The translations under genes and the position numbers were made by a program. A model generated the notes under the pieces. The model saw only the letters and a program-made list of their open reading frames with translations, did not search any database and was not told the origin of the DNA. A stretch of DNA of 64,000 nucleotides, taken from assembly GCA_002269645.1 (NCBI GenBank), contig NIVC01000581.1, positions 62,001 to 126,000 of the forward strand, in the 5' to 3' direction. Below are positions 521 to 40,617 of the stretch, piece by piece. This DNA comes from Macrostomum lignano. Taxonomy: Eukaryota. The first letter of the stretch is position 1. Each line of letters opens with the position of its first letter.

Positions 521-1027
521 CAACACAAGCCTCAGCCTACAACGCTAGTCTTGTTCATACGCCAATGTGCGTTTCAAGCAAGAAGACCCAGAAGGAATAT
601 ATTGTGCACAAAAATGAAGTCAAGCAGACGCACATTGTCAGTCACTGTTTGTCAGAAATTCCTCATGTTTTTATTTATTTAATTAAGTCTCATTGAAATA
701 TGATCCATATTTATTTTATAACATTCAACTAGAATTATTTCCATCAAATTTTAATTGATAAGATCAGGGAAAAATCATGACGAACTTACAGGTAAAATTA
801 GCACTTGGGATCATCTTTTGACTAAATTTCGTATAGCGCGTTTGCAAAAGAAATTACTGGGAGTTTTTCTAGCCTTTTTGTGGTTTTTGTGGGGACTTTG
901 ATGTCTAAGGACAGCATGCTTACACAGACTCAAGATTTGGAGCTTTTGTTAATGCTGCTGTCTATGCGTGAGCAGTCTCTGATGGCGCTAGCTGGTCTTT
1001 TGGCCAATAAGGATGAACTTGGCATGC

Positions 1028-1237
1028 TCAATGATGATGTCCGTCGTGCATGTGATGATCATGTCCGTCGTGCATGTGATGGTCATGTCCGTCGTGCGGA
1101 TGATGGTCATGTCCGTCTTGCCGGGTCCTCAGTTGATTCCTCAGCAGCATTTCGCCAGCGCTGAGGGCCTCCGTGCTGACCGCCAGCGCTGCCAGGCTCG
1201 TCACAACGAATGTTAGGATCGCGATAGTCGATGTCAT
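1028..1237 (-). CDS. Small secreted histidine-rich protein A (69 aa, single exon): signal peptide + EALSAGEML motif + DGHDHH(P/M)H repeats
   Basis: Internal Met of ORF 1028..1486 gives MTSTIAILTFVVTSLAALAVSTEA (signal-peptide-like), then LSAGEMLLRNQLRTR and 30 aa containing 15 His. The non-repetitive N-terminus is homologous to the 3814-4239 ORF. AATAAA-type signal downstream (tttatt on + near 669). Confidence 0.75.
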   Translation of the reverse strand: MTSTIAILTFVVTSLAALAVSTEALSAGEMLLRNQLRTRQDGHDHHPHDGHDHHMHDGHDHHMHDGHHH

Positions 1238-1368
1238 GCTGGCGGTTGATCGAGCTTGCTGGTACGAGGCTGCAACTTGAGAGTATTTGCCCACTACTTG
1301 CTTTGGCTGTCGCTTGCTCACTGAACCTGAGAGGCTGCCCCAACCACCGCTCCGGCCTGCATGTGGCC

Positions 1369-1378
1369 TTTTATTATA
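1369..1378 (-). promoter_or_regulatory. Possible TATA-like element (TATAATAAAA) upstream of His-rich gene A
   Basis: Motif lies ~130 nt upstream of the ATG at 1237 on the minus strand; position only, no functional data. Confidence 0.25.
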
Positions 1379-1745
1379 CTGTGCTGCGGCAGTGACACTT
1401 TCGTCTGTGGCTGAAACCGTTGGCCTGTAGGCGCAATTTCTCAAGCTTAAGGCCTGAACTGTTATGCCGAGCGAAACTTTGGCCATAGACTATTATCTGC
1501 TTGTCCCAGCCCGCGTAGCTGGATCGCTGAATTCAGAAAAGTACAACGATTCAATATAGCTGGTAAGAATGCAAACAGTTTCGAAAGACTTTATTGAGCG
1601 ATCCATCTTGATCATTTAGTATCTGGGCCCGTTTGTACTTTTAGTCAACATCAAGAATTCGCTTTTTTGTCATACTCGTAGATTTAAAGACTGGGTGGCT
1701 TTCCAAATAATAGTGGCTAACAAATAAATCTGTCATTCTACGAGT

Positions 1746-2105
1746 ATCCACTGGTCCTTGCCTCTTATCCACTGGTCCTTGCCTCTTATCCACTGGTCCT
1801 TGCCTCTTATCCACTGGTCCTTGCCTCTATCCACTGGTCTTTGCCTCTATCCACTGGTCCTTGCCTCTATCCACTGGTCCTTGCCTCTATCCACTGGTCC
1901 TTGCCTCTATCCACTGGTCCTTGCCTCTATCCACTGGTCCTAATTGCCTCTATCCACTGGTCCCTGCCTCTTATCCACTGGTCTTTGCCTCTATCCACTG
2001 GTCCTTGCCTCTATCCACTGGTCCTTGCCTCTTATCCACTGGTCTTTGCCTCTATCCACTGGTGTTTGCCTCTATCCACTGGTCCTTGCCTCTATCCACT
2101 GGTGG
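1746..2105. repeat. Minisatellite, 20-21 bp unit (atccactggtccttgcctct)
   Basis: Direct tandem repetition; explains ORFs 1758, 1841, 1861 and 1944. Confidence 0.95.
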
Positions 2106-2639
2106 TCCTTGCTTTTTCTATCCATACAAGAACAAGAAGAAAATGGGACAAAACGCCGAGTGCGTGCCAGTCTTCGGCGGTAGGGTGCCTGCAGCGTCAC
2201 CCAGTAGCTCTTGCATCACCGGCTGTGGGCAGTACCACTCATCGCGGATGATTTGGCCTGCCAGGCAGATTCGGCGATGGCACAAAAACTTTGTCATTAA
2301 TTTGTTTGATGAGGGACTGATTATTTCCTGACAATTTATCTGCAGTCTTTACCTGAGCTGCAGGCGAAGCTAGCGTTTGACCTAAGCTGCGATATCATTG
2401 CACCGCGCAGGAGGTGTCTATCAAGGCTGATCTGGGACTACCATGAGTAACTGGGCGCCGGAGGGACCTTCAGGGCCGTATAGGAGTTGGAGCGCTGATC
2501 GAACCGAGGCTGTCGCCTCGGCGTTCCGGCGACACTACAGCTGATGGGCGCAGAATGAGCTGCACGAACTCTTAATTCGCCGCCATCGTAAACGCGCTGA
2601 CACTCCCGCTGCCAGACAATCTGACGCTGCCGTCTGAGA

Positions 2640-3140
2640 CGCCGTCGCTGGAGAAGAGCTTCAGCATGTGCCAGTAAGCACAGCCGACGTTTTGAGGCTT
2701 GCCCAATTGTCGCCGGGCGGGAAAGCGCTGGGTCCGGACGCCATGCAGTTAGGTCGCCAGAGTACCGGCCGCGTACTCTTCGGCGAGGATCGGCGCCCAA
2801 CGAATGGGCCACGGAATACATCGCAGCTATTCCTCTCAGAAGCCGCACAGCACAACCTTGAGGAGGAGTATGAGGGCATCGATCTGCCTTCGGTCGTGGA
2901 GTAGTGGCACAAATTCTGGCTTTTCGCTGAGGCATCGAAGAGGCGCGGATACGCTAGCAGATCCTGATGTTATCTTGGGGATTCGCAGATATACAGATTC
3001 ACAGATTTGTAGATTATGTATTTGTCGATGGATAAGTACATGTAGGGCTGCGTTCCCAATGGTGGTGCCAAATCAGCTGGTTTCCGCCATCATGGCGATG
3101 TGCTGTGACACGAAACTGCGTGTCAACACCGGACGGCCTA
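2640..3140 (+). mobile_element. Possible decayed non-LTR retrotransposon (RT-region) relic
   Basis: Translations VSTADVLRLAQLSPGGKALGPD (resembles the LINE pre-RT K-A-P-G-P-D-G motif) and LVSAIMAMCCDTKLRVNTG (resembles the RT segment before QG). Broken by stops and frameshifts; no YADD seen. Confidence 0.3.
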
Positions 3141-3813
3141 TCGAGACCTGACAGCTGTAGACTCGCTCGAATAGCCAGATCAAGCGGCGCACGCTGGCCT
3201 GCTACTCGTCGACTTCAAGATCGGCGACAAACGAGTTCCAACGCGGCACCACTCTGTTATCATCGCACCGGCCCAGAGCGTCCGAGCGTTATTAATCCTT
3301 GCCACCATCCCCGCCTCCATCAACAGTATTCAGGGCCTCGCGACTATGGCAATTTGATAATTATTTAAACGCAAGAACTGACACAGCATTGTTTCTGATT
3401 TAAATTACTGATTTCTGATTTAATTTTCTCCAATTTACTTCAATTTCTTATTTATTTCAAGTGCATCGATAGCAGAATCAAAGCAAATAATTGGTTAGTT
3501 TTTACATGCAGGACTGATTAGCATTTTGCAACAGATGTAATCATGCAATAGCGGACACTAGAATTGAAATAAAAGGCGGAAAGATGCTTAGATGAAGGTG
3601 CGATCAATATAGAGTTTTCTGTTGTGTTAGGATTATGATTTGTGTGGATAATTGGACTGATTGGCCTACATGTACGTACAATGACAAGTTGGAGTGGATT
3701 CGAGGAAGCGGAATAAAACTTCAACATGCGAATGCCTGTCACGTTTTAGTCTTCTGGCTTGAATTCAGTGACCACGATATTAGTGATGATGGTCGTCATG
3801 GTGGTGATGACCG

Positions 3814-4239
3814 TCATGATAATGATGATGACCGTCGGTGATGGTGATGGTTGTCATGGTGATGGTGATGACCGTCATGGTGGTGGTGATGGTCGTCATG
3901 GTGATGGTGATGACCGTCATGGTGGTGGTGGTGGTGATTGTCGTCATGGTGATGGTGATGACCGTCATGGTGGTGGTGATGGTCGTCATGGTGATGATGA
4001 TGACTGTCATGGTGGTGGTGATGGTCGTCATGGTGATGGTGATGACCGTCATAGTGGTGGCGATGGCCTTCATGTCGGTGGCGATGGCCTTCTTGGTGGT
4101 GGTGATGGTCGTCATGGTGGTGGCCGTCATTGGCTAGTTCGAAGAGCATCTCGCCAGTACTGATGGCGTCGGCCTTGGTCAGCAGGGCAGCGGCGCTCAT
4201 CAGGCCGACTGCCAGAAGTGCGATCAAATACGAGCTCAT
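3814..4239 (-). CDS. Small secreted histidine-rich protein B (141 aa, single exon): signal peptide + DAISTGEML motif + D(G/D)HHHHH repeats
   Basis: MSSYLIALLAVGLMSAAALLTKADA is signal-peptide-like. 63 His counted in the translation. Shares the [ED]A[LI]S[AT]GEML motif with gene A, including synonymous nucleotide differences. Confidence 0.8.
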   Translation of the reverse strand: MSSYLIALLAVGLMSAAALLTKADAISTGEMLFELANDGHHHDDHHHHQEGHRHRHEGHRHHYDGHHHHHDDHHHHHDSHHHHHDDHHHHHDGHHHHHDDNHHHHHHDGHHHHHDDHHHHHDGHHHHHDNHHHHRRSSSLS

Positions 4240-5542
4240 TGCTAGCGGCGTAGTGGGTGGTCCTATGCCAGTGAAAAACGTGTGGTGCTCTCGTATCTAG
4301 CAGATCGGAAATTAGCTCAAGCTGCTGCAGCTCTCACTTAAACTGCTGCGCTCGAGACTCAGCCCATCGAACCTGTCTCCACAGTCCAGTCTTGTCTGTG
4401 TAAAAAACCCTGGCGTTGATGCCACAAATACGTCTATGGCAGCATTGGGAAACGAATTAACTCATGGCTTCTTTAAACAGATATTTGTTTTTTTAATGCA
4501 TTTCAGCGCAGAATTTGATTGAGGTCTTGCTATAGGCTGACTGTAGTTAAATGCACTTTTTAAAATCAATAGACTTTAAGAAGCAGCACACATGAGAACT
4601 GATGTCCCCAATTGCTTAGTTGTACATGTATGTGTGGGCATGAAAAATCATAGGACAACAACAGCAAAATGATTTGCTCATGAATTCGTACGCACTGTGC
4701 CAGTCAGCCAGTGGCTATATTTATGTACAGGTGTGTTTTTTTGTACACGCCTTTTATACATATGTCGCACTTTGACAGTAAAAGCAGTGGTAAATGGGAG
4801 ATACTTGGATATGGAGCATCGTTGTGGTTTTCGGCCTTGCTTTTTCCCTATGGTCATGCAGTGGAGATGGCTGAATGATGATGTTCTGACTTTATCTACT
4901 TTCACTTAATGACGTACGAGGCTTTTCTCTAAAATTTACAATATGTATATATAAACCAGAATAATTGCATGTTTCTAAACCAGTACATGTACCTGTGTAG
5001 GAAAATGACAACCACCAACTTAACACAGCTGTACGAGTATACAGTGTACGTAAAAATATTTTCAATTTACAAATATGAATTCTTTGATAAAGATATGAAG
5101 ACTTTTTGCCATTTCGGTATTCCTTATTTATCCATTATTCCACTCCGTTTACCTACTATACTAAACAATCCACCAAAATGTTTTCATTTTCTACGATGAT
5201 ATCAGGGCGCGCATATGCCTACTGCACTGTCTTCAATGTCGTGGAGTAGTGGTGCATCCTGGCTTTTCGCCAAGTCATCGAAGAGGCGCGGATACGCTAG
5301 CAGATCCTGATTGTTATCTTATCAGGATTGGCTTATTCCCGATTCTAGAACAAGAATCAGTTTGAAACTTTTAATTTTGCTTGTTTCATTAATTTTCCGG
5401 GCTCAAAACTAGCTGTTTCTTGAACGAAAATTTCTCGTTTTACTGCTGTGTTCTAGTTTCTAAGCTATGGAAATCTATGTTACCGATTCTTTTGAGCTAT
5501 ATTTTATTCCTCGTGGCTTGTCTTCTCTCTAAAAAAATAAAT

Positions 5543-9019: not shown

Positions 9020-9692
9020 TCTATCGTCTCTTCTGTTTCCTTTCTTCTCTCTCGTCCCTCGTCTCTCCTCTCTCCTCTCTCTTCTCTCCTCTCTTCTCTC
9101 GTATCTTCCCTCATCTCTTCCTTATTCTTTTCTCTCTCCTCTCCTCTCTCCTTTCTACTTTTCGTTTTCTCTCCTCTCCTCTCCTCTCTCCTCTCTCCCA
9201 TCTTCTTTCGTATCCTCCCTCATCTTTCTTCTCTTTCATATCTCTTATCTCATCTCTTCCCTCTTCTTTTCTCTCTCCTCTCCTCTCCCCTCTCTACTTT
9301 TTCGTTTTCTTTCTCCTCTCCTCTCTCCTCTCTCCCCCTCTTCTCTCGTCTCTTCCTTCTCCTCTCTATTCTTTTCTCTCATATCTTAACTCTCTCCTCT
9401 ACTCTCTCATCTCTTAACTCTCTCCTCTACTCTCTCATCTCTCCTCTCTACTCTTTCCTGTCTCCTCTCTCCCCTTTTCTCTCGTCTCTTCCCTCACCTC
9501 TTTCCTCTCTCTCTTTCCTTTTATCTCTTTTCTTGTTTTATCTCTTCTCTCTCCCCTCGTCGCTCGTCTCTTCCCTCACTTCTCTTCTCTCTTGTCTCTT
9601 CCCTCACCTCTCTTCTCTCTCGTCTGCTCTTTCATCTCTCCTTTCTCTTCTTTTATCTTTTCTCAATTATCTCTTCTCGTTTCTCTCTGCTC

Positions 9693-9784
<92 letters not shown>

Positions 9785-10680
9785 TTCTCTCTCTCTCTTT
9801 CTCCCTCTCTCTCTCTTTCTCTCTCTCTCTCTCTATTTCTCTCTCTCTTTCTCCCTCTCTCTCTCTCTCTTATCTCTCCTCTCCCATCTATCTTCTCCTC
9901 TCTTCCCTCTTCATTCTCCTATTTCCTCTTCTCTCTCCCTGTCTCTCCTCTCTCCTCTAGTCTCTGTAATCTCTTCTCTCTTATCTCTCCTCTGTTCTCT
10001 CTACTCTCCCATCTCTCGTCTGTTCACCCTCATCTCTGCTCTCTCATCTGTCATCTTTACTCTCTTATACGTTCTCTCACTTATCTCCTCTGTACTCTTC
10101 TCTTCACCTCTTCTGACTCCTCTCTTTCCTTACTCCTCTCTTCTTTTCTCTTCCCTCTTCTATACTCTCTCTCCTCTATTATCTTCTCTCGTCTCTCTGC
10201 ACTCTCCTCTCACCTTTTTCATCTCTCATCTTTACTCTCTCATCTCTCCTTTAATCTTTCTCATCTCTACAATCTCATCTCTCCTTTCTCCCCTCTTCTT
10301 ACACCCCTCTCTTATCTCTATCTCTTCTCTTCTCACTCCTCTCTCCCCCTCTTATCTCCTCTCTTCTCTATCCTTTCTACTCTCTCCTCTCTAATCTCTC
10401 CTCTCCTCTTGACCCTCTGTCATCTTCTTTCTGCTCTCTCATCTCTACTCTCTTCTCACTCTTCTCTACTCTCCTCTCATCGATCCTCTGTCTCATCTCT
10501 CCCCTCTTCTCACATTTACTCTTTCCTCTCCCTCCTTTCTCCCCTCCTCTCGCATCTTCCTCACTTCTTCTCTGCTCTCTCCTCACCACTTGTCTCTCCT
10601 CTTATATTCCATGTTTTCTCATATCCCCCTCTCGCCTCTCCTCTCTTCTAATAGTCTATTCCTTCTCCTTTCCACTCTCA
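9020..10680. repeat. Polypyrimidine CT-rich low-complexity tract with a (CT)n core near 9700-9870
   Basis: Almost purely C/T on the + strand; produces the spurious 574-aa Leu/Ser ORF. Confidence 0.95.
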
Positions 10681-12339: not shown

Positions 12340-13633
12340 TTGTGTATGTATATATAGAAACATTATACTAAGTATATCCGAACTTCAATTGCCAAGCCAA
12401 CTTTAAGGGCCTATCCTAGAAATTTCTTATTTCCTATAAGATTTCCAATATAGTCAACTGCCTAGGGCCTATTTATAATGCAAAATCAATTTTTTAAGTT
12501 GAAAGAAAATTGCCAATTGTTGATTCATAATAAGCAATTAATTATTGACTAATAATAGCTAAATTGTGCAATTTGAACTACCAATAACAGCAGTATGAAC
12601 AAGCCTTTAAGTCATACATGCGCAACTGCTGGCCAACCTGGTCAATCTGGCCACCATAAATTGTGGTGGAACAGGGGTAAGTCGCAAAAATGCCTAGCCT
12701 AGAGAATATGGACGTAGTACTAATTAGATGACGAGGCATTTAGCCCTTATAGGACATTATAAAGCATTAGGGTTTCTTTTACAAGTAAGTCGCATTTTTG
12801 GTCAAAAAGTAAGTCGCATGGCCTGTGTAAATCAGGGGGGTTGTGCATGTATGCTTTAAGTTATGGGTATCATCTTTTTCTATTACTTTTGTATCATTGG
12901 TTTAAAACATTGTTCAGTCTAGCAAAAAATGAAAGGCAGTGACCCTTGTCTATTTTAACTTATTTTTGTCTAAATGCAAATTAGGAAAACATTTTACTAT
13001 CTAATAGAACTATATATAGATTCTATGGCCCAATCCTAATGAGTTCAAGCAAATAGATTTATCTCAAATAATATGCATAGTTTTATATATTTCAACTAAA
13101 TATTGATCCCTAAACTATATGTATAAGGAAGTTATAATAAGAGAAAATGTTAATAGCTAGAAATGAGAGCATATATTAAAAATGGTTTGCTACCAAGGCA
13201 TTTATTCATCTATTGTCCTATATGCCATGCTATACAATATTTAAATTTAAACTTGAATGATAAGTATAAAGCATAATTTGAAGTAACTTAAATTTTATTA
13301 CTTTAAGAATAGATAGAAACCTTGTATACCCACTGAATATTAATACCATTTCATATTTATTTAATCTTTATATTAGGCATTTTAAACCAGTTATCAAATC
13401 AGATAGACAATACTTTTGAGCAATATTAGTCTCTATGTTTCTTTCTATTAGAAAATTACACCAAGTTTAAGATTTATTAGCTAACAATTCTAATAGGTAT
13501 AATAATGCACACCTAGCCATTAATTAGTCAGGAGTAGTCAGTTAATATGTTCTCTAAAATTTCGGAATGAAATTTCCATCTTGAACTGAAAGTATGGATA
13601 GAACTGCATCTGACTGGTATAAATAACTGCAGC

Positions 13634-15496
13634 ATGGAGGACCCTGCCGGCTTTGTTACCATAGAAACTCCAAAGGCAGCTGTCGGCGACCTGGACTTCA
13701 CAGGCAACCAGCTGAGCCCACAGGCGCCGCTGGGCATCAAAGACGCGCTGTCCTGGCGCCGGCTGCAGCTGCGCCGGGCCAAGCTGAAGGCTGCCAGCCG
13801 GACTTCCGCCCTGCTGTCTGGCTTCGCCATCGTGGCCATGGTGGAGCTGGAGATCGGGCAGCGGCCCGTGCCCGACTGGCTGCTTGTGGCCTTCGCCTGT
13901 GCCGCCTCTCTGCTCATCGCTGTGCACATGCTGGCGCTCATGATCAGCACCTGCATCCTGCCCAACCTGGGGATCGCCACTCCTATGGATGCAAGGTGGG
14001 TCCGGGCAGGGTCAGATTTATAGCTCACTGGCTGCCCATCTCTCCTGCATTCACTGACTGCTGCTGCCCACCACCCCTGCATTCACTGACTGCTGCTGCC
14101 CACCTCCCCTGCATTCACTGACTGCTGCTGCCCACCTCCACTGCATTCACTGACTGCTGCTGCCCACCACCCCTGCATTCACTGACTGCTGCTGCCCACC
14201 TCCCCTGCATTCACTGACTGCTGCTGCCCACCACCCCTGCATTCACTGACTGCTGCTGCCCACCACCCCTGCATTCACTGACTGCTGCTGCCCACCTCCC
14301 CTGCATTCACTGACTGCTGCTGCCCACCACCCCTGCATTCACTGACTGCTGCTGCCCACCACCCCTGCATTCACTGACTGCTGCTGCCCACCTCCCTTGC
14401 ATTCACTGTCACTGACTGCTGCTGCCCACCTCCCCTGCATTCACTGACTGCTGCTGCCCACCACCCCTGCATTCACTGACTGCTGCTGCCCACCTCCCCT
14501 GCATTCACTGACTGCTGCTGCCCACCACCCATGCATTCACTGACTGCTGCTGCCCACCACCCCTGCATTCACTGACTGCTGCTGCCCACCTCCCTTGCAT
14601 TCACTGTCACTGACTGCTGCTGCCCACCTCCCCTGCATTCACTGACTGCTGCTGCCCACCCCTGCATTCACTGACTGCTGCTGCCCACCACCCCTGCATT
14701 CACTGACTGCTGCTGCCCACCTCCCCTGCATTCACTGACTGCTGCTGCCCACCTCCCCTGCATTCACTGACTGCTGCTGCCCACCCCTGCATTCACTGAC
14801 TGCTGCTGCCCACCACCCCTGCATTCACTGACTGCTGCTGCCCACCTCCCCTGCATTCACTGACTGCTGCTGCCCACCTCCCCTGCATTCACTGACTGCT
14901 GCTGCCCACCACCCCTGCATTCACTGACTGCTGCTGCCCACCTCCCTTGCATTCACTGTCACTGACTGCTGCTGCCCACCTCCCCTGCATTCACTGACTG
15001 CTGCTGCCCACCCCTGCATTCACTGACTGCTGCTGCCCACCTCCCCTGCATTCACTGACTGCTGCTGCCCACCCCTGCATTCACTGACTGCTGCTGCCCA
15101 CCTCTCAGTCACTCATTGGCTGCCTCTCTACTCAAGCTCGTATTTGCCCGCAGGTCGATCCGCGAGTCTCCGCACGACAAGATGCGGGTGTTCATAGAAA
15201 TTGCATGGGTATTCAGCACCGGCCTGGGCATACTACTGTTCCTAGTAGTAGTTGTTCTGCTTGCCTGGGTGAAATTCCTGACTGTGTCCCGTGGCGCAGC
15301 TATCGGTGCCACGGTCATCATCGCGCCCGTCGTGCTGCTGTTCCTGGTCTTCTCGCTGCTGTTCTACCGTCAGCTCACGCTGCACAAGTTCCAGCGCGCC
15401 ACCAAGCTGGTCCAACGGCTGCAGCGCGACCTGAAGGCGTTTGGCGACGACCCCGGGGTCGCTGAAGACGTTGACGACGTCGTTAAGGTGGTGTGA
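13634..15496 (+). CDS. ORAI: Orai (CRAC channel pore subunit) homolog, 2 exons: 13634-13995, 15154-15496
   Basis: [33 protein letters not shown] (TM1), [15 protein letters not shown] (TM2), [15 protein letters not shown]...WVKF (TM3), FYRQLTLHK (TM4/nexus). The GT..AG phase-2 intron joins both exons in frame. Confidence 0.95.
14045..15102. repeat. Intronic minisatellite, 32 bp unit (cccctgcattcactgactgctgctgcccacc[a/t]), ~33 copies, in the Orai intron
   Basis: Direct tandem repetition. Confidence 0.95.
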
Positions 15497-16094
15497 ATGC
15501 CTGCCGAAACTCACGTGATGACTGCGCGCATTTCGCTTCAGTTCTGTTTGAAAATAATCTGAATTCTCTGTGATGGCGCGTGGCAAAGGTGCGTGAGAGT
15601 AGTTATAGGAGGGCAGTACGAATGTGGACTCAGGCATGCAGGCGAAATGCTTGTGAGGTGTGCGTGTAGTCTGACAGTCGCATAATCAGTACATCAGTGA
15701 TTTTAGTTTCAGTTCTGTGTGAATTCCACTTACTGGACTGAATCTCTTTCATGTGTTTTCCAGTTCGCTGGTGTCCTGTGGATTCTCTGAAATATTGTAC
15801 AAATTTTGTATATTGCTGTGTTGCATTGCTGTGTCCACTGCGGTGAATACTGCTGCGTGTTTTTCATATTTGCGGTCGCATATAAAATGCAAGCATATAG
15901 ATTGATTCTTTGCTTATTTCGTCTTTGAGTTCCTCTGGTTTCTGAGTAACTGACTTCTGGCAGACTTTTCATTCCCACAATACAGAGAAAGTAAAGATTC
16001 TCCTGTTTTGAAACCACGTTTTGCAAGAAGCAATCGGTTGTTCTTTTGTAATTCATTGGTTACTGGTCAGTGGGCTGAAAGGTAAATAAGAGGA

Positions 16095-17150
16095 TAGTGG
16101 TGAATGGTCAGGAGAGTGATGGAGGTGATTTGTGAGGAGGGTGATAGAGGTAAGTTGTCAGGAGGGTGATGGAGGTGAATTGTCAGGGGTGGAGGTGCGT
16201 TGTCAGGACGGTGATGGAGGTGAATTGTCAGGGGTGGAGGTGCGTTGTCAGGAGGGTGCTGGAGGTGAGTTGTCAGCAGGGTGATGGAGGTGAGTTGTCA
16301 GGAGGGTGATGGAGGTGAGTTGTCAGGAGGGTGATGGAGGTGCGTTGTCAGGAGGGTGCTGGAGGCGCGTTGTCAGGAGGGTGATGGAGGTGCGTTGTCA
16401 GGAGGGTGATGGAGGTGCGTTGTCAGGAGGGTGATGGAGGTGAATTGTCAGGGGTGGAGGTGCGTTGTCAGGACGGTGATGGAGGTGAATTGTCAGGAGG
16501 GTGATGGAGGTGAGTTGTCAGGAGGGTGATGGAGGTGAGTTGTCAGGAGGGTGATGGAGGTGCGTTGTCAGGAGGGTGATGGAGGTGCGTTGTCAGGAGG
16601 GTGATGGAGGTGAATTGTCAGGGGTGGAGGTGCGTTGTCAGGACGGTGATGGAGGTGAATTGTCAGGGGTGGAGGTGCGTTGTCAGGAGGGTGCTGGAGG
16701 TGCGTTGTCAGGAGGGTGATGGAGGTGACTTGTTAGGGGGTGATGGAGGTGAGTTGTCAGGAGGGTGATGGAGGTGAATTGTCAGGGGTGGAGGTGCGTT
16801 GTCAGGACGGTGATGAAGGTGAATTGTTAGGGGGTGATGGAAGTGCGTTGTCAGGAGGGTGATGGAGGTGAATTGTCAGGGGGTGATGGAGGTGAATTGT
16901 CAGGAGGGTGATGGAGGTGAGTTGTCAGGAGGGTGCTGGAGGCGCGTTGTCAGGAGGGTGATGGAGGTGCGTTGTCAGGACGGTGATGGAGGTGAATTGT
17001 TAGGGGGTGATGGAGGTGCGTTGTCAGGAGGGTGATGGAGGTGAATTGTCAGGAGGATGATGGGGGTGGGTCTTCAGGGGGGTGATGGAGGTGAGTTGTC
17101 AGGAGGGCGATGGAGGTGAGTTGTCAGGAGGGCGATGGAGGGACAGGGTA
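16095..17150. repeat. G-rich minisatellite, ~25 bp unit (ggagggtgatggaggtgagttgtca), immediately upstream of SUZ12
   Basis: Direct tandem repetition with 21-25 bp variants. Confidence 0.95.
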
Positions 17151-17314: not shown

Positions 17315-20300
17315 ATGGTGAAGGCCGGTCAGCAGCAGCGCCAATCAACTGGGCCGTCTGAGTCGTCAGGCTGTCTGCCCCGCGTGGCTTCGAGCACCTC
17401 GTTGAGCAGCCTGGCGTCCTCGGCCGGGGCTGGCGGCGGCAACGGCAAGGCGGCGACCTCTGTGGCAAAGCCGGAGCCGCCAACTGAGGAGGCCATGGCG
17501 CATGCAGCCTTCATCGGGGTGCTCTCGCCGCCCACTCACCTGTACCGCTACCTGGCCATGCGGCACCGGACGTCGCCAATATTTCTGACCCGCAGCCTGT
17601 CCTACATTGGCCGGCCAGTCGGCAGGTCCGGCAGCCGCAGCCTGGCCGAGTCCACCGCCGCCCTGGCCGGCCGGCCCGTGGCTGCCCCGCCAGAGCTGCC
17701 GGCGGAGACGCCAGCCTGGGATTTGCCGCGCAACGCCTCGCTGGAGCTGCGCTTTGCCGGCTTCTTCGACTCGAACCGGGAGAAGGAGTGGGTGACGGTG
17801 TCCGCCCGCCTGGACCTGGCTGTGGTGCACCGCTGCTACAACAGGCGCAAGTCCACCCGGTCCAGCGGGCAGCGCCACTTGGCCTGCCTGTCGCTGGAGT
17901 GCAACCCGTACTCCCGGACTCAGCGGCCGCACCGCAACGGCCACGGCAGCGCTGGCGCCGACTCGGAGCCGCCTGCCGACTTCACCGTGCTGAACAAAGA
18001 CCTGCGCGATCCGCAAGCCAACCGGATTGTGCAGAGCTACCTGCTGCTGCGGGTCAGCGCCATGGAGAAGAGGAACTACTCCAAGATGTACGACTCTCCC
18101 CCCGGGGCCAGGAAGTCGCACAAGAAGGACGTGACGGAGTACCCGGTGCAGTATTGCGCCGTGCTGCCGCTGTTTAACCACGGCCGGGCCCAGACCTGCA
18201 CCAGTAGCGGCACAGCCATCGACTGCCCGCTGCAGCTGTACACCGGCGAGTACGAATGCCGCCTGGAGTGCCTGGGCGCCGAGGAGCCCGCCGACCTGGT
18301 CAGCGCCTCCGCCCGGGTGCTGCAGGAGTGGCACGGCAGCCGCATCCGGCCGGCCTCGGCAGAGGCTAGCGAGTACGAGCGGTGGCCCGTGGTTCGATTC
18401 TCAGCTCGCTGGACCGGCGTGACCGGGGAGCCGGCGGGCGCGGAGGCTCTGCAGCAGCCGCCTCAAGCGGAGGCGCAGGCAAAGGAGGAGCAGCTGCAGC
18501 AGAAGTCGCGCAAGCGGCAGCACAGCGGCACCGCCAAACAGTCGGCCGGCAGCAAATCCGGCGCTGGAGGCGACTGGCGGGTCATTTATAATTTTTATCA
18601 CGCTGGGCGATGTCGCCAGTGCACTGAGGTTGGTGACGACCGCCGTGACCACGAGATGCTTTACCGAATCGGGTCTCCACTTCGCCACTAATATCCTTGG
18701 TGACTATTTCCACTCCTTGCCCCCGAATTCCCCCCACTCTTGCATCCGCGCCGGAATCCCCCCCCATTCTTGCATCCGCCCCGGAATTCCACCCATTCTT
18801 GCATCCGCCCCGGAATTCCCCCCATTCTTGCATCCGCCCCCGAATTCCACTCATTCTTGCATCCGCCCCGGAATTCCCCCCATTCTTGCATCCGCCCCCG
18901 AATTCCACTCATTCTTGCATCCGCCCCGGAATTCCCCCCATTCTTGCATCCGCCCCGAATTGCACTCATTCTTGCATCCGCCCCGAATTCCCCCCATTCT
19001 TGCATCCGCCCCGGAATTCCCCCATTCTTGCATCCGCCCCGAATTCCACTCATTCTTGCATCCGCCCCGGAATTCCCCCCATTCTTGCATCCGCCCCGGA
19101 ATTCCCCCGATTCTTGCATCCGCCCCGGAATTCCCCCCCCATTCTTGCTCTTGCATCCGCCCCGGAATTCCCCCCCCATTCTTGCATCCGCCCCGGAATC
19201 CCCCCCCCATTCTTGCATCCGCCCCGGAATTTCACCCATTCTTGCATCCGCCCCCGAATTCCCCCCATTCTTGCATCCGCCCCCGAATTCCACTCATTCT
19301 TGCATCCGCCCCGGAATTCCCCCCCCATTCTTGCATCCGCCCCGGAATTCCACCCATTCTTGCATCCGCCCCGGAATTCCCCCCCCCATTCTTGCATCCG
19401 CCCCGGAATTCCACCCATTCTTGCATCCGCCCCGGAATTCCCCCCCATTCTTGCATCCGCCCCCGAATTCCACCAATTCTTGCATCCTCCCGTGCAACAT
19501 ACCGGCCCTCAAAATCCATATTCGCCTTGCCAAATTTCCACATGCATCCGCACCCACGCGTCCTCCAGGTGGACGGCCTCCGCTGCCCCTGGTGCGACCT
19601 GGACTGTCGCCAGGCCAACGGCCTTCTGTGCCACCTGCGCGCCTGCCATTCGCGCCTGGCCTTCGCCAGCATCTCCGAGACCTCCGCCGTGAAGCGTCGC
19701 CGCCTCCTGCTGGAGGTCCGCATCAACTCCGACTACAACGGCGGCTATGAGGGCGACCCGGCCTGTCTGTTCCGTTCCACCGGATTCGAACCCACGCCCT
19801 TCCCGGCCCGCCGGCTGCCGTTCACCCACCTGATCCACTGGCGCGGGGCCGCCTGCTCCGCCCAGCAGACGCTGGTGGCGAACCCGCGCCCGCTCGTCAG
19901 CGGGCACACGCGGCAGTATTTCCACTCGCAGACCTGCGTGCCGCTGCTGCCCCAGGAGATCGATGCCGACTCCGAGGACGAGATCGCGCCGGACTGGCTG
20001 CGCCAGAAGTACTCTCGAAACCTGGAGGACTTTACGGATGTCAACGAAGGCGAGAAGGCCGTGATGATGGCTTGGAACCTGCACGTGATGACCTGGGAGG
20101 GCGGCCCCGTAACAGGGCAGCACCAACTGCCGCAGCTGTGCAGCACCTTCATCGACCGCTGCGCGCCCGACCTGCTGGCCCGCGGCCTGCGCGGCAACCT
20201 GCTGTTGCACCTGGCCAGCCTCACCGACTACGGCCTGGTGCGGCCCGACCTGCTCTATGAGCTGCTGCTGCGCGTCAATCAGCTCGCTGGTGACCAGCCC

Positions 20301-20324
20301 CAGCCCATGGCTGTGGATGCCTGA
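17315..20324 (+). CDS. SUZ12: Polycomb protein SUZ12 homolog (PRC2), 2 exons: 17315-18628, 19569-20324 (~689 aa)
   Basis: HAAFIGVLSPPTHLYRYLAMRHRTSPIFLTRSLSY (N-terminal conserved box), C2H2 finger CPWCDLDCRQANGLLCHLRACH, VEFS box GHTRQYFHS...DSEDE...WL...DFTDVNEGEK...WN. The phase-0 GT..AG intron joins RQCTE|VDGLRCPWC, matching SUZ12 RQQTEAREDLHCPWC. Confidence 0.95.
18718..19488. repeat. Intronic minisatellite, ~28-31 bp unit (cattcttgcatccgccccggaattccccc), in the SUZ12 intron
   Basis: Direct tandem repetition; explains the overlapping repetitive ORFs from 18630 to 19750. Confidence 0.95.
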
Positions 20325-22040: not shown

Positions 22041-22107
22041 GATCAGTCACAGCTAGGTTGGTCAGAGCAATCCTGTTACTTTTCACCCGCGCCGCACTAC
22101 AGCTCCC

Positions 22108-22187
22108 ATGTCGAGTCTCCTTTGGCAAGCTGTGTCAGCGCGCAGCCTTCGGTGCCTGTGCCGCTGTCCCCCAGCCCGGCTGATGTC

Positions 22188-22220
<33 letters not shown>

Positions 22221-22968
22221 TCATGAGCAGTACAAGCATTCGCAGCAGCAACAACAGCAGGAGGAGGATGCGAAACGCAGGAAGAAGCTGGCCGTGTTGT
22301 CCTGCGCCCTGACCACCACGGTATTCGCTGGTTTCTACGTGTGGAAAGAGTCCCGCCTGCGCCAGCTGGAGGCCCAGGTGACGCAGGGTCGCGTCGGCTC
22401 CGAGTCCTCTTTCGGTTCCTCGTCGGTTGGCCGCGGCGGTGGTCAGTCCGACGGCGCGCTAGCAGTCGGTGGTGACTTCCGCCTGCTCGACCAGCGGGGC
22501 CGCTACGTGTCCCGGGCGGAGCTGTCCGGCAACAGCGGCTGGTTATTGCTGTACTTCGGCTTCTGCCACTGCCCGGACATCTGTCCCGAGCAGATGGAGA
22601 AGATGGCCGAGGTTGTGGAGCGGTTGCGGCTGGCCAAGGACCCGCTCCGGATCACCCCGGTATTCGTGAGCATCGACCCGGAGCGCGACACGCCAGCCCT
22701 GGTCAAGGAGTACATCGCTGATTTCAGCGACAAGTTCATCGGCCTCACCGGCACCAAGGCCGAGGTTGACGAAGTAGCCAAGAAGTACAGAGTGTACTAC
22801 AGCAAGGGCCCAGTTGACCAGGACGGGGACTACATAGTGGACCACGCGATCATCATGTACCTGGTGAGCCCGGACGGTAGCGTAGTGGATTACTACGGCC
22901 AGACCAAGACTCCGCGCGAGATTGCGGGCTGCATCGCCAAAGTTGTCAAAAGTCATCGTGCGGCGTGA
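22108..22968 (+). CDS. SCO1: SCO1/SCO2 mitochondrial copper chaperone for cytochrome c oxidase, single exon, 286 aa
   Basis: Targeting-peptide-like N-terminus, polyQ, TM segment, GGDFRLLDQ, LYFGFCHCPDICP (CxxxC), FVSIDPERDT, YRVYYS, YIVDH. Confidence 0.95.
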
Positions 22969-25686: not shown

Positions 25687-28600
25687 ATGATCTCCAACGG
25701 GCTCAGTCCGCTGCGAGTCATCTGCGAGCTCGATGGGCGCAGCTCCACCCTTGGCCAGTTCCCACAGCCTCTCAGCCTCTCCCAGCTCAGCGCCTCTCTG
25801 CGCAGCGTCTACGGCCGCCAGCTTAAAGTGCAGTTCACCATGCCGTGCGGCTCCGTGCAGCCAATCAGAAGCCAGCAGGACCTCAACACCATTGTGACCA
25901 TCGCCGCTGACCACTACGAGCAGGAGGCCGGCACCCTTCGTCTGCGACTCCAACCGGAAAGCCCGGACGCCACCACAAGTGAGTAGCCTGAAGTGTCGAA
26001 TTGTTTTGTGTGGTTCTAGATAGAGTGAATGTTCCGAAGGACTTGCAAGCATTGGAGCCTCAGTCTTCACGCCCGTGTGTTGAATATTTTTCGCACCGCC
26101 GCAGGTCCCGAGTCGCAGCCGCCCGCCCCGCCCAGCTTCCTGTTGCCCGAATTCCCATCTCGGTTCAGCGCCGCGAGCGCTCAACCTCGGAGCGGCGCAA
26201 CAGCCGCAGCTCCAGGCTGTCCGACGCGGGGGTCAGCGAAGATGGCGCCGTGCAGAAGGAGCAGCTGGCGCCGTTCGTTCCAGCCAGGCACCCCAGCGGC
26301 CAGGGACTCGACTCGGTTGCGGACAACTCGGACAGTGAGTCGCGAGGAGTTTCTCCTACCTGTAGCTTCTATAAGTAAAACCCCATGTGCGTTACAGCTG
26401 GCCAGTATGCCGGGGGGGCTTTCGAGTCTGGCCCAGCGATCGACAGCTGGGGAACAGTTGGAGAAGGGACAAGTGCGCTCCCCTAGAAATGGGACCAAAC
26501 TTGATCTCTGTTTAAAGCTGAGCAGCAGCTGAGGGAATCACAACTGACATGAGTTCGCAAAACAAAACGCAAGTCTGTTTTGTGCTTAGAAAAATTAAAG
26601 GCGAGCTTTGAAAATTGGGACTGCAAAGTTTTACTTCCAGAATGGGTTTAAAGATACTGACGTCTATTTATAGAACTGACTATTCCGAGCAGAATAAAGC
26701 AACCATTAAAATCTGTTCAATCCAGAAGGAATCGGCCTTCCATGTCCTTCCATGTCTCAGTGATCCCGGATCACCCACAGCCAGCTAGCGGGCAAGTTGC
26801 CCTTCCCGAGCACGTGCACGGATAGATAGAGGAATATCGATCGCAGGCAGAGCTCTCACATCTGTGCACCAAGGACTACTTAAGTAGAATGACATGAAAC
26901 TTGGTTTCCTGCAAAATTTTGGATGCAGGTTTTACCATGCAAAAGAGTAAATTACGGAGAATGGGGCTTTTCATATTTTCAGCACAAAAATTGCTGTTGC
27001 TATTGATGGGAGGCAAACCCAATGTTCATCTTTTGATATGGTTTGACTTTCTTTATAGCTCTATTGGTATTCGTGAAGCTTTTTTGTTTTGAAAGCCAGG
27101 ATTTTATGTATATTTTGCACCCTATGTACAATCGCACATGTCCTGTGCCTAAAAATCATAAAAATGGCAAAAAAATGCACTAAGTGGTTTTATGAATCTA
27201 TTTTAGTATCCTTTGTCTATTGACTGTGCAACAAAAAGCTTTACGAATATCAATAAATCTGTAACAAAGGCAAGTCATATCAAAAGATAAGCACTGGGTC
27301 TGCCTCCTATCAAAAGCAATAACAATTTTTATGTTGAAAAAATGAAAACCTCTTATCTCCGAATGTACTTTTCGGTAAAACCTGCCTCCTAAAAATTTCC
27401 AACAAAAGTAGTTTCGCGTCCTCCTACTCGAGTAGTTCCTGCTGTACACCTGCAAGCCAAGATCCGTACGAGCTGCAAGAACCCCGGATTAAAATTTGGC
27501 CACGCTCCGCGGGTCCGGAATCGAACCCCGGCAGCTTTCGTGACAGCAGCCGACAGAACCTCGTTTCCTTCCAGTTGGCCAAATCGCTCTGAACTTCGAG
27601 AAGTGCACCTTCCTTGGCCAGGGCTCCTTTGGCAAGGTGTACAAGTGCGAGGATTTCAACACTGGTCGCATCTACGCCGTGAAGGTGGTGGAGCTGAACT
27701 CGCACAGCCTGGAGTCGCAGGCCGTTCGCTCCCTGGAGCAGGAGATCCGCCTGCTGCGCGCCATCGAGCACCGGCGCATCGTGAAGTACTTCGACTGCCG
27801 GCGGGAGCCCAACCGGCTCTGTATTTCATGGAATTCATGCCGGAGAACAGCCTGCGGCACTACATCCGCGCCCGCGGACCGCTGAACGAGAAGGCGGCCA
27901 TGCGGTTCACCCGGATGGTCATGGAAGGCCTTCACTTCCTGCACAGCAGGGACATCATCCACAGAGATGTCAAGGGTGAGCTGCTGGCGTGTGGGATGGG
28001 ATCACCGCGATGTCATGGGTGGGAGGTGGGTCGGAATGTGCTTTCTGGGGTATGGAATCGCCTTGAGGTCATGAAGAGCGGCTGGTGGGGGTGTGGGATC
28101 ACCTCAAGGTCATTGGGAGCGTCTGGCGGGGGTGTGGGATCACATCAAGGTCATTGGGAGCGTCTGGCGGGGTGTGGGATCACATCAAAGTCATTGGTAG
28201 CGGCTGGCGGGGGTCTGGGATCACCACAAGGTGGGGGGTGTGGAATCACCTTGAGGTCATTGGGAGCGGCTGGTAGGGGTGCGGGATCACATCAAGGTCA
28301 TTGGTAGCGGCTGGTGGGGTGTGTAATCACTGAGCCAGAATGGGGCTGCCAATATCAACCCGATGGATTCCCGCAGCCGCGAACATCCTGAAGGACTCGC
28401 ACGGCAAGGTGAAGCTGTCGGACTTCGGCGCGGCCAAGCGCATCCAGGAGATCGGCACCAGCCACTCGGTCACCGGCACCGTTTTCTACATGTCGCCAGA
28501 GATGATCGGTGGCGAGGCCCACATCGACTTTAAGACCGACATCTGGTCGCTGGGTGCCACCGTGGTGGAGTTCCTGACGGGGCAGCCGCCGTACCACCAC

Positions 28601-28798
28601 TGCGACAACCCAGCCGCGGTGGTGCTGTGCATCATGAACCACCCGGAGCACTTCCGCATGCCTGCGGAGGCCAGCGATGTCGCCCGCGACTTCATCCGGA
28701 CCTGCTTCGCGCGGCCCGCCTCCCTCAGGCCGGGCGCGGAGGAGCTGCTGCGAAACCACCCGTTCCTGCCGCCTCTCGACGACTCGCCGCCCTTCTGA
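25687..28798 (+). CDS. MAP3K3: MEKK2/3-like MAP3K paralog A (PB1 + kinase). Exons ~25687-25978, ~26119-26334 (acceptor uncertain), 27575-27975, 28377-28798; apparent -1 frameshift at ~27824-27826
   Basis: PB1-like LRVICELDG...FPQPL...SQQDL. Kinase motifs LGQGSFGKVY, AVK, LEQEI, HRDVK|AANIL, DFG, GTVFYMSPE, DIWSLG. The frames join only if one T is added in tgtatttcatgg (CIFMEF). Start codon and exon 2 acceptor are less certain. Confidence 0.85.
26914..27398. mobile_element. ~485 bp fold-back element with ~170 bp inverted arms inside MAP3K-A intron 2; related partial copies at ~23670-23900
   Basis: Left arm cacaaaaattgctgttgctattgatgggaggcaaaccc matches the reverse complement of the right arm (cataaaaattgttattgcttttgataggaggcagaccc) and the sequence at 23720-23760. 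Confidence 0.65.
28090..28330. repeat. Intronic minisatellite, ~40 bp unit, in MAP3K-A intron 3
   Basis: Repeated gtgtgggatcacatcaaggtcattgggagcg. Confidence 0.85.
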
Positions 28799-29844: not shown

Positions 29845-32800
29845 CAGTCTTTGTTCACTCCTGTAGCTAGTGTACAGTCAGTCTTTGTTCACTCCTGTAG
29901 CTACTGTACAGTCAGTCTTTGTTCACTCCTGTAGCTACTGTACAGTCAGTCTGTTCACTCCTGTAGCTACTGTACAGTCAGTCTGTTCACTCCTGTAGCT
30001 ACTGTACAGTCAGTCTGTTCACTCCTGTAGCTACTGTACAGTCAGTATGTTCACTCCTAGCTACTGTACAGTCAGTCTGTTCACTCCTGTAGCTACTGTA
30101 CAGTCAGTCTGTTCACTCCTGTAGCTACTGTACAGTCAGTCTGTTCACTCCTGTAGCTACTGTACAGTCAGTCTGTTCACTCCTGTAGCTACTGTACAGT
30201 CAGTCTGTTCACTCCTGTAGCTACTGTACAGTCAGTCTGTTCACTCCTGTAGCTACTGTACAGTCAGTCTGTTCACTCTGTAGCTACTGTACAGTCAGTC
30301 TGTTCACTCCTGTAGCTAGTGTACAGTCAGTCTGTTCACTCCTGTAGCTAGTGTACAGTCAGTCTGTTCACTCCTGTAGCTACTGTACAGTCAGTCTGTT
30401 CACTCCTGTAGCTACTGTACAGTCAGTCTGTTCACTCCTGTAGCTACTGTACAGTCAGTCTGTTCACTCCTGTAGCTACTGTACAGTCAGTCTGTTCACT
30501 CCTGTAGCTACTGTACAGTCAGTCTGTTCACTCCTGTAGCTACTGTACAGTCAGTCTGTTCACTCCTGTAGCTACTGTACAGTCAGTCTGTTCACTCCTG
30601 TAGCTACTGTACAGTCAGTCTGTTCACTCCTGTAGCTACTGTACAGTCAGTCTGTTCACTCCTGTAGCTACTGTACAGTCAGTCTGTTCACTCCTGTAGC
30701 TACTGTACAGTCAGTCTGTTCACTCCTGTAGCTACTGTACAGTCAGTCTGTTCACTCCTGTAGCTACTGTACAGTCAGTCTGTTCACTCCTGTAGCTACT
30801 GTACAGTCAGTCTGTTCACTCCTGTAGCTACTGTACAGTCAGTCTGTTCACTCCTGTAGCTACTGTACAGTCAGTCTGTTCACTCCTGTAGCTACTGTAC
30901 AGTCAGTCTGTTCACTCCTGTAGCTACTGTACAGTCAGTCTGTTCACTTCTGTAGCTAGTGTACATTCAGTATTTGTTCACTCCTGTAGCTACTGTACAG
31001 TCAGTATTTGTTCACTCCTGTAGCTACTGTACAGTCAGTCTGTTCACTCCTGTAGCTACTGTACAGTCAGTCTGTTCACTCCTGTAGCTACTGTACAGTC
31101 AGTCTGTTCACTCCTGTAGCTACTGTACAGTCAGTCTGTTCACTCCTGTAGCTACTGTACAGTCAGTCTGTTCACTCCTGTAGCTACTGTACAGTCAGTC
31201 TGTTCACTCCTGTAGCTACTGTACAGTCAGTCTGTTCACTCCTGTAGCTACTGTACAGTCAGTCTGTTCACTCCTGTAGCTACTGTACAGTCAGTCTGTT
31301 CACTCCTGTAGCTACTGTACAGTCAGTATTTGTTCACTCCTGTAGCTACTGTACAGTCAGTCTGTTCACTCCTGTAGCTACTGTACAGTCAGTCTGTTCA
31401 CTCCTGTAGCTACTGTACAGTCAGTCTGTTCACTCCTGTAGCTACTGTACAGTCAGTCTGTTCACTCCTGTAGCTACTGTACAGTCAGTCTGTTCACTCC
31501 TGTAGCTACTGTACAGTCAGTCTGTTCACTTCTGTAGCTAGTGTACAGTTCAGTCTTTGTTCACTCCTGTAGCTACTGTACAGTCAGTATTTGTTCACTC
31601 CTGTAGCTACTGTACAGTCAGTCTGTTCACTCCTGTAGCTACTGTACAGTCAGTCTGTTCACTCCTGTAGCTACTGTACAGTCAGTCTGTTCACTCCTGT
31701 AGCTACTGTACAGTCAGTCTGTTCACTTCTGTAGCTAGTGTACATTCAGTCTGTTCACTCCTGTAGCTACTGTACAGTCAGTATTTGTTCACTCCTGTAG
31801 CTACTGTACAGTCAGTCTGTTCACTCCTGTAGCTACTGTACAGTCAGTCTGTTCACTCCTGTAGCTACTGTACAGTCAGTCTGTTCACTCCTGTAGCTAC
31901 TGTACAGTCAGTCTGTTCACTCCTGTAGCTACTGTACAGTCAGTCTGTTCACTCCTGTAGCTACTGTACAGTCAGTCTGTTCACTCCTGTAGCTACTGTA
32001 CAGTCAGTCTGTTCACTCCTGTAGCTACTGTACAGTCAGTCTGTTCACTCCTGTAGCTACTGTACAGTCAGTATTTGTTCACTCCTGTAGCTACTGTACA
32101 GTCAGTCTGTTCACTCCTGTAGCTACTGTACAGTCAGTCTGTTCACTCCTGTAGCTACTGTACAGTCAGTCTGTTCACTCCTGTAGCTACTGTACAGTCA
32201 GTCTGTTCACTCCTGTAGCTACTGTACAGTCAGTCTGTTCACTCCTGTAGCTACTGTACAGTCAGTCTGTTCACTCCTGTAGCTACTGTACAGTCAGTCT
32301 GTTCACTCCTGTAGCTACTGTACAGTCAGTCTGTTCACTTCTGTAGCTAGTGTACATTCAGTATTTGTTCACTCCTGTAGCTACTGTACAGTCAGTCTGT
32401 TCACTCCTGTAGCTACTGTACAGTCAGTCTGTTCACTCCTGTAGCTACTGTACAGTCAGTCTGTTCACTTCTGTAGCTAGTGTACATTCAGTATTTGTTC
32501 ACTCCTGTAGCTACTGTACAGTCAGTCTGTTCACTCCTGTAGCTACTGTACAGTCAGTCTGTTCACTCCTGTAGCTACTGTACAGTCAGTCTGTTCACTC
32601 CTGTAGCTACTGTACAGTCAGTCTGTTCACTCCTGTAGCTACTGTACAGTCAGTCTGTTCACTCCTGTAGCTACTGTACAGTCAGTCTGTTCACTCCTGT
32701 AGCTACTGTACAGTCAGTCTGTTCACTCCTGTAGCTACTGTACAGTCAGTCTGTTCACTCCTGTAGCTACTGTACAGTCAGTCTGTTCACTCCTGTAGCT

Positions 32801-40500: not shown

Positions 40501-40617
40501 GAGTCGGCCAGCCAAGAAGCTGCACGCTTCATCGCGGATTGCTTTGCCGCAGTTGAGGAAAGGCCCAGCGCTGAAGAGCTGCTTCTGTATCCGTTTTGCG
40601 AGCCTTTCTGCGACTGA
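37568..40617 (+). CDS. MAP3K3: MEKK2/3-like MAP3K paralog B (PB1 + degenerate kinase). Exons 37568-37949, 38782-39185, 40202-40617; apparent -1 frameshift at ~38915-38930
   Basis: PB1-like IRVKCVCNGQLRRL...PRP...LDQHDLD. Kinase motifs LGHGSFGAVY, SMK, HCDIK|CANIL, DFS, FYTPPE, DIWSLG. Phase-1 introns at the same positions as paralog A. Could be a pseudogene or pseudokinase. Confidence 0.8.
39291..39594 (-). mobile_element. tRNA-derived SINE copy 1 (antisense, in MAP3K-B intron)
   Basis: Minus strand shows A box TAGCCTAGTGG and B box GGTTCGATTCC, then CCTTGAGCAAGACACTTAAC...CAGCTGTAAAATGGG (CORE/Meta-like central domain) and an (ATT)n tail. Second copy at 55173-55484. Confidence 0.8.
39705..40201. 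repeat. Intronic minisatellite, 33 bp unit (aggtgttaaaatcagcatcctgatctcgctcac), 15 copies, ending at the splice acceptor
   Basis: Direct tandem repetition; (40202-39707)/33 = 15. Confidence 0.95.

Follow-up and report, generated by a model that had tools for sequence, protein, structure and literature searches.

Peptides and proteins rich in histidine are known from several secretory and metal-handling systems. Histatins are cationic and contain about 25% His, and such secreted peptides bind Zn or Cu, with an activity that often depends on metal or pH. Nvjp-1 of the Nereis jaw, the HBPs of squid beak and the His-rich domains of mussel preCol are likewise secreted and His-rich, and in these proteins metal coordination cross-links or cures the material. 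Runs of His with Asp or Gly, presumed to bind Ni or Zn at many sites along a disordered chain, are also found in Hpn of Helicobacter, in ZrgA and the ZnuA loop of bacteria and in HRP2 of Plasmodium, the last being built of tandem repeats, and in the ectodomains of LIV-1-type ZIP (SLC39) transporters a signal peptide stands directly before HxHxDH-type clusters of His and Asp. One report (PMC13022425) deals with a mussel example of His-rich glue proteins. In the 64,000-nucleotide stretch analysed here (the window), which belongs to contig NIVC01000581.1 of the flatworm Macrostomum lignano (assembly GCA_002269645.1, Mlig_3_7; window position 1 is record position 62001), two minus-strand open reading frames (ORFs), A and B, encode small His-rich products that resemble each other and no named family. 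With a confidence that is evenly balanced, they are read as old tandem paralogues: orphan, lineage-restricted genes for secreted poly-His peptides, with tails encoded by minisatellites. The features of the two ORFs are as follows.

1028 to 1237, minus strand: ORF A, 69 residues from an internal ATG at 1237, with the stop codon TGA at 1028-1030
1175 to 1237, minus strand: signal-peptide-like segment of A, MTSTIAILTFVVTSLAALAVS, with an uncharged hydrophobic core and the small residues A-V-S at -3 to -1
1145 to 1171, minus strand: conserved motif of A, EALSAGEML
1031 to 1117, minus strand: His/Asp tail of A, DGHDHHPH DGHDHHMH DGHDHHMH DGHHH
1368 to 1378, minus strand: TATA-like element, TATAATAAAAG, about 130 nt 5' of the internal ATG of A and within a longer, 152-residue frame
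670 to 715, minus strand: AATAAA hexamers, putative poly(A) signals, 312 and 352 nt past the stop codon of A
3814 to 4239, minus strand: ORF B, 141 residues with 63 His as assembled, with the stop codon TGA at 3814-3816
4171 to 4239, minus strand: signal-peptide-like segment of B, MSSYLIALLAVGLMSAAALLTKA, with an uncharged core and T-K-A at -3 to -1
4144 to 4170, minus strand: conserved motif of B, DAISTGEML
3838 to 4128, minus strand: His/Asp tail of B, with older, diverged units (DGHHHDDHHHHQEGHRHRHEGHRHHY) first and then near-identical units of 42 bp for DGHHHHH-DDHHHHH
3780 to 3837, minus strand: continuation of the His repeat of B in a shifted frame (...DGHHHYHDGHHHHDDHHH), with a TAA at 3780-3782
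3451 to 3456, minus strand: AATAAA, a putative poly(A) signal 323 nt past the out-of-frame TAA of B (3780), at a spacing like that of A

Both ORFs were found where the first-pass annotation of this DNA had placed them, each with an ATG, a hydrophobic segment, a motif and a His/Asp tail. The N-terminal part of A (MTSTIAILTFVVTSLAALAVSTEALSAGEMLLRNQLRTRQ) comprises a 21-residue hydrophobic start, the EALSAGEML motif and the linker LRNQLRTRQ, and is followed by three DGHDHHxH units and a final DGHHH at the stop codon. The N-terminal part of B (MSSYLIALLAVGLMSAAALLTKADAISTGEMLFELAN) comprises a 23-residue hydrophobic start, DAISTGEML and FELAN, and is followed by a 97-residue tail of D[GD]HHHHH-type units with the assembled end HHHHRRSSSLS; the count of 63 His in 141 residues given earlier is correct, and amounts to 45% overall and about 57% past residue 30. 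The tails are built from different repeat units, as had been claimed: Tandem Repeats Finder (TRF) detects a 24-bp unit in A (1031-1121; 3.8 copies, 91% matches) and a period of 21/42 bp in B (3799-4123). All of these periods are multiples of three, and the tail of B also contains an in-frame insertion of 6 bp. B lacks the basic RTR site of A.

Local alignment of the two N-termini gives 15 identical residues out of 32 and a score of 56, compared with a mean of 24.7 (standard deviation 4.6) for shuffled sequences; this score was matched in 1 of 20,000 plain shuffles and in none of 20,000 in which the hydrophobic core was shuffled separately from the rest. When the N-terminus of either ORF was searched against the window by tblastn, the other copy was the only match (E = 0.001 in a six-frame search), and no frame of the 64 kb contains a His-rich stretch other than those of A and B. 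At the nucleotide level, the likeness (1245-980 versus 4248-3968) extends from about 8 nt 5' of the ATGs to the ends of the tails, and the promoter and untranslated flanks are unalignable upstream and downstream, which is the pattern expected if the coding sequence alone was kept. The two copies share the motif [ED]A[LI]S[AT]GEML with synonymous differences (AGC/AGT, GAA/GAG, CTG/CTC). The similarity, being confined to the coding sequence and statistically significant, supports the assignment of A and B as paralogues. Only the proposed frame, out of six, is open through the N-terminus and tail in both copies, and this openness together with the limits of conservation favours coding. Two alternatives, antisense Met/Val-rich ORFs and a Thr/Ile-rich frame that crosses the tails, were rejected as genes, as they are neither open nor conserved over the N-terminal region in both copies.

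The N-termini of A and B are signal-peptide-like by simple criteria, as had been proposed, and secretion is predicted on this basis. Mean Kyte-Doolittle hydropathy over 12 residues from residue 5 is 2.43 for A and 2.50 for B, with no charged residue, and both ORFs are among the 16 of 325 ATG-initiated ORFs of at least 50 residues in the window that combine an in-frame ATG with an uncharged hydrophobic segment. Each hydrophobic core spans 16-17 residues and lacks a basic n-region before it, and the putative cleavage sites AVS/TE (A) and TKA/DA (B) obey the -3/-1 rule by eye. Both ATGs are preceded by a purine at -3. AlphaFold, run on the single sequence, predicts a helix at residues 2-37 and a tail of low-confidence unstructured coil.

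Each ORF has a peculiarity at one of its ends. The mechanically called ORF of A, with 152 residues, begins at an ATG at 1486, and the 69-residue form given in the first-pass annotation begins at the internal ATG at 1237; the extension between them (1238-1486) is open in frame for 83 codons and has no counterpart in B, where an in-frame TAG lies 20 codons before the ATG. The nucleotide at -3 is A for the ATG at 1237 and T, a poor context, for the ATG at 1486, and the TATA-like element located within the extension would favour the 69-residue form if it is functional. The ending of B in HHHH-RR-SSSLS does read so in the assembly, but is the product of a frame break of about 2 bp near 3836-3838, where CACCATCACC/GACGG is found in place of the unit CACCATCACCATGACGG. 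Beyond the break, the repeat runs on in another frame as ...TDGHHHYHDGHHHHDDHHH to the TAA at 3780-3782; without the break, B would finish as ...DDHHH before the stop codon, resembling the ...DGHHH of A. The break may be an indel of the PacBio-based assembly or a real 3' frameshift that removes the final 18 residues; if real, this truncation would sit in a genome where the neighbouring SCO1 gene is present in several redundant versions.

Relatives of A and B were sought in several collections, and the earlier statement that they match no named family was upheld by Pfam, the protein databases, the Protein Data Bank (PDB) and metagenomes. Pfam searches with A, B and the 152-residue form gave nothing significant and no match better than E = 0.09. 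A profile of both N-termini with the first His units, searched against 5.8 billion protein clusters, returned six candidates sharing words with the profile, none of which scored. The sole match of the same profile in an exhaustive HMMER search of 1.84 billion representatives was a 1268-residue TPR-repeat protein (LNNLAALLSKTNRLSEAE), which was judged spurious. The PDB search returned only the His loop of ZnuA (1pq4, E = 0.74), which is a compositional match, and a scan of JGI metagenomes with two N-terminal patterns gave 286 pattern matches, of which none was confirmed. Nothing relevant came from full-text literature searches, whether on the repeat units or on His-rich proteins of Macrostomum or platyhelminths. 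With no homologue in any collection searched, a wider family is unproven.

The architecture of A and B resembles that of histatins and other animal His-rich peptides in that a signal peptide precedes a short, disordered, His-rich product, but A and B are acidic (Asp-rich), contain up to 45% His and are made of exact tandem units, and no homology to histatins or to a known animal His-rich family was found by Pfam or exhaustive profile search. Hpn, ZrgA, the ZnuA loop and HRP2 share with A and B their runs of His with Asp or Gly, but belong to other organisms and compartments, and none has the GEML N-terminal module; the Pfam match to ZrgA (E = 0.97, 9.8 bits against a cut-off of 27.4) is below threshold and driven by composition. 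The proteins of hardened or adhesive materials are larger and rich in Gly, Ala and Tyr, with structured or coacervating domains, whereas A and B have Asp/His tails of 45-120 residues without Gly/Tyr-rich blocks, and the exhaustive profile search gave no similarity to such proteins. LIV-1-type ZIP ectodomains have the same order of signal peptide and His/Asp clusters, but the tails of A and B are directly followed by stop codons, and no Pfam match to the Zip domain (PF02535) was found in A, B, the 152-residue form or the six frames of 2300-3450, the minisatellite and AT-rich segments at 1487-2299 and 3451-3779 lying outside the profile scan.

Exact look-ups of B and of the 69- and 152-residue forms of A found none of them recorded as an annotated gene product. 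The 69-residue form is below the usual length cut-off of TransDecoder, which may add to the lack of annotation. A and B are largely made of TRF-detectable repeats, and the GenBank annotation of M. lignano discarded transcripts that overlapped repeat annotations (PMC5730564), so that a missing annotation says little about expression.

Several observations weigh against A and B being genes for secreted peptides. Their transcription and translation are themselves inferred, no homologue was found in the searched collections (annotated M. lignano proteins at NCBI and UniProt included), and non-coding minisatellites saturate the window around them. The 83-codon extension of A is unexplained, and B is frame-broken near its 3' end. 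The openness of the tails carries little weight, since repeats of CAY, GAC and GGN codons are free of stops in most frames, as is seen from the ORFs that overlap there. The first-pass annotation had taken the synonymous changes within the motif as a sign of selection; the changes are present, but the signal is weak, with dN of 0.43, dS of 0.83 and a ratio of 0.52 on a small sample of 32 aligned codons, in which the differences by codon position number 12, 8 and 16; these values tilt the balance to coding but do not settle it. Of its overall interpretation, the paralogy, the signal-like N-termini and the lack of a named family hold, but not the strength of the argument from synonymous changes, and the roles that it named (sclerotisation, eggshell, stylet, defence) are candidates. 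The codon usage departs from that of the genuine genes of the window: His codons CAT and CAC are in a ratio of 10:5 in A and 30:33 in B compared with 6:33 in the SCO1, Suz12 and kinase exons, and the Gly codon GGA used in the repeat of A is rare in those genes. The main rival explanation, doubtful but with a real claim to consideration, is that no peptide is made today, A and B being either the decaying remains of a former, duplicated gene or an untranslated minisatellite of His codons behind an old ATG-plus-hydrophobic stretch. The break in B, the codon usage, a dN/dS that on 32 codons is indistinguishable from relaxed constraint, the lack of annotated or database relatives and the gene-poor, repeat-rich surroundings would fit such a history, as would the multiple copies of the SCO1 gene of the region (among those annotated, g3 and g4), in the presence of which decay of single copies is expected. 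Yet the N-terminal regions of A and B have diverged by about 37% at the nucleotide level, and at this distance an unconstrained pair should carry stops or frameshifts there; instead, each copy still has its ATG, a hydrophobic core and GEML, with the His tail in frame, the flanks have diverged past alignment while the coding sequence has not, and the tails have been rebuilt from unlike repeat units and are still His/Asp-rich and in frame.

A further explanation, judged very improbable, would make the ORFs parts of larger membrane proteins such as LIV-1-type ZIP transporters, either as 5' exons or as N-terminal ectodomains, or would make A, in its 152-residue form, a protein with an internal membrane anchor. 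Signals followed by His-rich N-termini do occur in ZIP transporters, the frame of A stays open over the 83 codons before the internal ATG, and hydrophobic cores of 16-17 residues are near the upper limit for signal peptides. Stop codons, however, follow the tails directly and are not preceded by a donor-like site, no Pfam domain was detected in A, B, the 152-residue form or the six frames of a GC-rich block downstream of B, and the exhaustive profile search returned no transporter; the extension of A is not conserved in B and contains the TATA-like element. Three elements separate B from A: an AT-rich stretch, the GC-rich block at 2300-3450 (about 1.1 kb) and, at 1745-2103, a minisatellite of 20-bp units. 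The six-frame Pfam scan of the GC-rich block detected no coding sequence and no downstream exon was found between B and A, nor was there a convincing ORF past B to about 13.5 kb; exons of a transporter or of another larger protein are nowhere indicated downstream. A remnant of a LINE reverse transcriptase suspected at 2600-2900 on the plus strand was unsupported by Pfam.

If A and B are secreted-peptide genes as favoured here, each pre-peptide would consist of an N-terminal secretory signal, a short conserved GEML linker and an intrinsically disordered His/Asp tail. The tails would be coding minisatellites that slippage during replication or unequal exchange, the processes behind tandem repeats genome-wide, expanded separately in each copy (units of 24 bp in A, of 21/42 bp in B). 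Metal chelation is the natural chemistry of His/Asp tails, and the mature products may be acidic poly-His peptides that chelate Zn, Ni or Cu through clusters of imidazoles, with Asp as an additional ligand; such binding is suggested by the composition (45% His in B) and by analogy with histatins, Hpn, HRP2 and the ZnuA/ZrgA loops. An amino-terminal Cu- and Ni-binding (ATCUN) site requires His as the third residue of a free, defined mature N-terminus; DGH would resemble one only if cleavage fell exactly before the Asp. The peptides would work extracellularly or in secretory granules and either buffer or sequester metal or, switched by metal or pH, serve as condensing or antimicrobial peptides; metal buffering, antimicrobial action, granule condensation and curing of material are the candidate roles.

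A bolder proposal, which is held to be unlikely, is that A and B represent a young Macrostomum-restricted family in which the signal-plus-GEML module secretes natural poly-His tags and tail length and unit evolve by minisatellite expansion, giving tunable metal-binding or metal-curing peptides in a flatworm-specific secretion (adhesive glands, rhabdites, stylet, eggshell or seminal fluid). Polymorphism of tail length with functional consequences would then be expected from copy to copy and possibly from individual to individual. Secreted His-rich peptides as such are already known; the combination of a GEML N-terminus with an acidic poly-His minisatellite tail would be a new, lineage-restricted variant without a detectable relative. 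If A and B are real genes, their products would to our knowledge be among the most His-rich animal proteins, and they would constitute an unannotated orphan family in a model organism for regeneration and bioadhesion as well as a tractable case of minisatellite dynamics acting on coding sequence. They would also mark a blind spot of annotation that is repeat-masked and filtered by transcripts, from which short genes with tandem-repeat coding sequences are lost by design. If unexpressed, they are a curiosity of a minisatellite-rich genome.

The surroundings of A and B were examined for genes and repeats. Two features place the window on its contig.

record 74105 to 94968 (window 12105 to 32968): locus L002
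window 22105 to 22968: single-exon SCO1/SenC copper-chaperone gene

The SCO1 ORF (22108-22968) is 97% identical to a M. lignano protein, and with one additional upstream codon it is the exact annotated product of NIVC01000581.1. Three near-identical M. lignano versions of SCO1, including the copies g3 and g4, are found on three contigs and illustrate the redundancy of the assembly. Contig NIVC01001368.1 (locus L001) is collinear with the window over about 8.6-33 kb at 92-97% identity, in a comparison whose 10-kb flank around SCO1 reaches to about window position 7100, and is a homeologous or redundant copy, as expected of the M. lignano genome, which was recently duplicated and of which simple and tandem repeats make up 15% (PMC5730564). 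The window is full of TRF-detected minisatellites with units of 17-67 bp, many of them intronic, and an Rfam scan of the whole window found nothing. A dispersed repeat of 85 bp, 89% identical between its copies, is present on both sides of B (2893-2976 and 5238-5320), and a CT-rich low-complexity tract of 1.5 kb (9027-10584) gives rise to a spurious Ser/Leu-rich ORF of 574 residues.

Several further genes of the window contain or adjoin minisatellites. An Orai-type calcium-channel gene (13513-16456; compare 3821-5032 of L001) has an intronic 32-bp minisatellite (14031-15104); this gene is called on the homeologous NIVC01001368.1 and absent among the called genes of NIVC01000581.1 in the collection, and exact look-up of the Orai proteins obtained by homology search did not find them recorded as gene products. 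A SUZ12-type polycomb gene with Zn_SUZ12 and VEFS-box domains (17315-20324) is split by an intron consisting of a 29-bp minisatellite (18719-19491), the copy number of which is unequal between the two homeologous contigs. Two paralogous fragments of MAP3K-like kinase genes are found on the plus strand (27540-28798 and 39382-40617), with minisatellites of 41-bp and 33-bp units between their kinase-domain exons. An array of about 234 copies of a 32-bp unit (97% matches) spans 7.5 kb (29852-37386) immediately past the first MAP3K-like kinase exons and is also present on the homeologous contig. In the second MAP3K-like fragment, the 33-bp array is open in frame as (GVKISILISLT)n.

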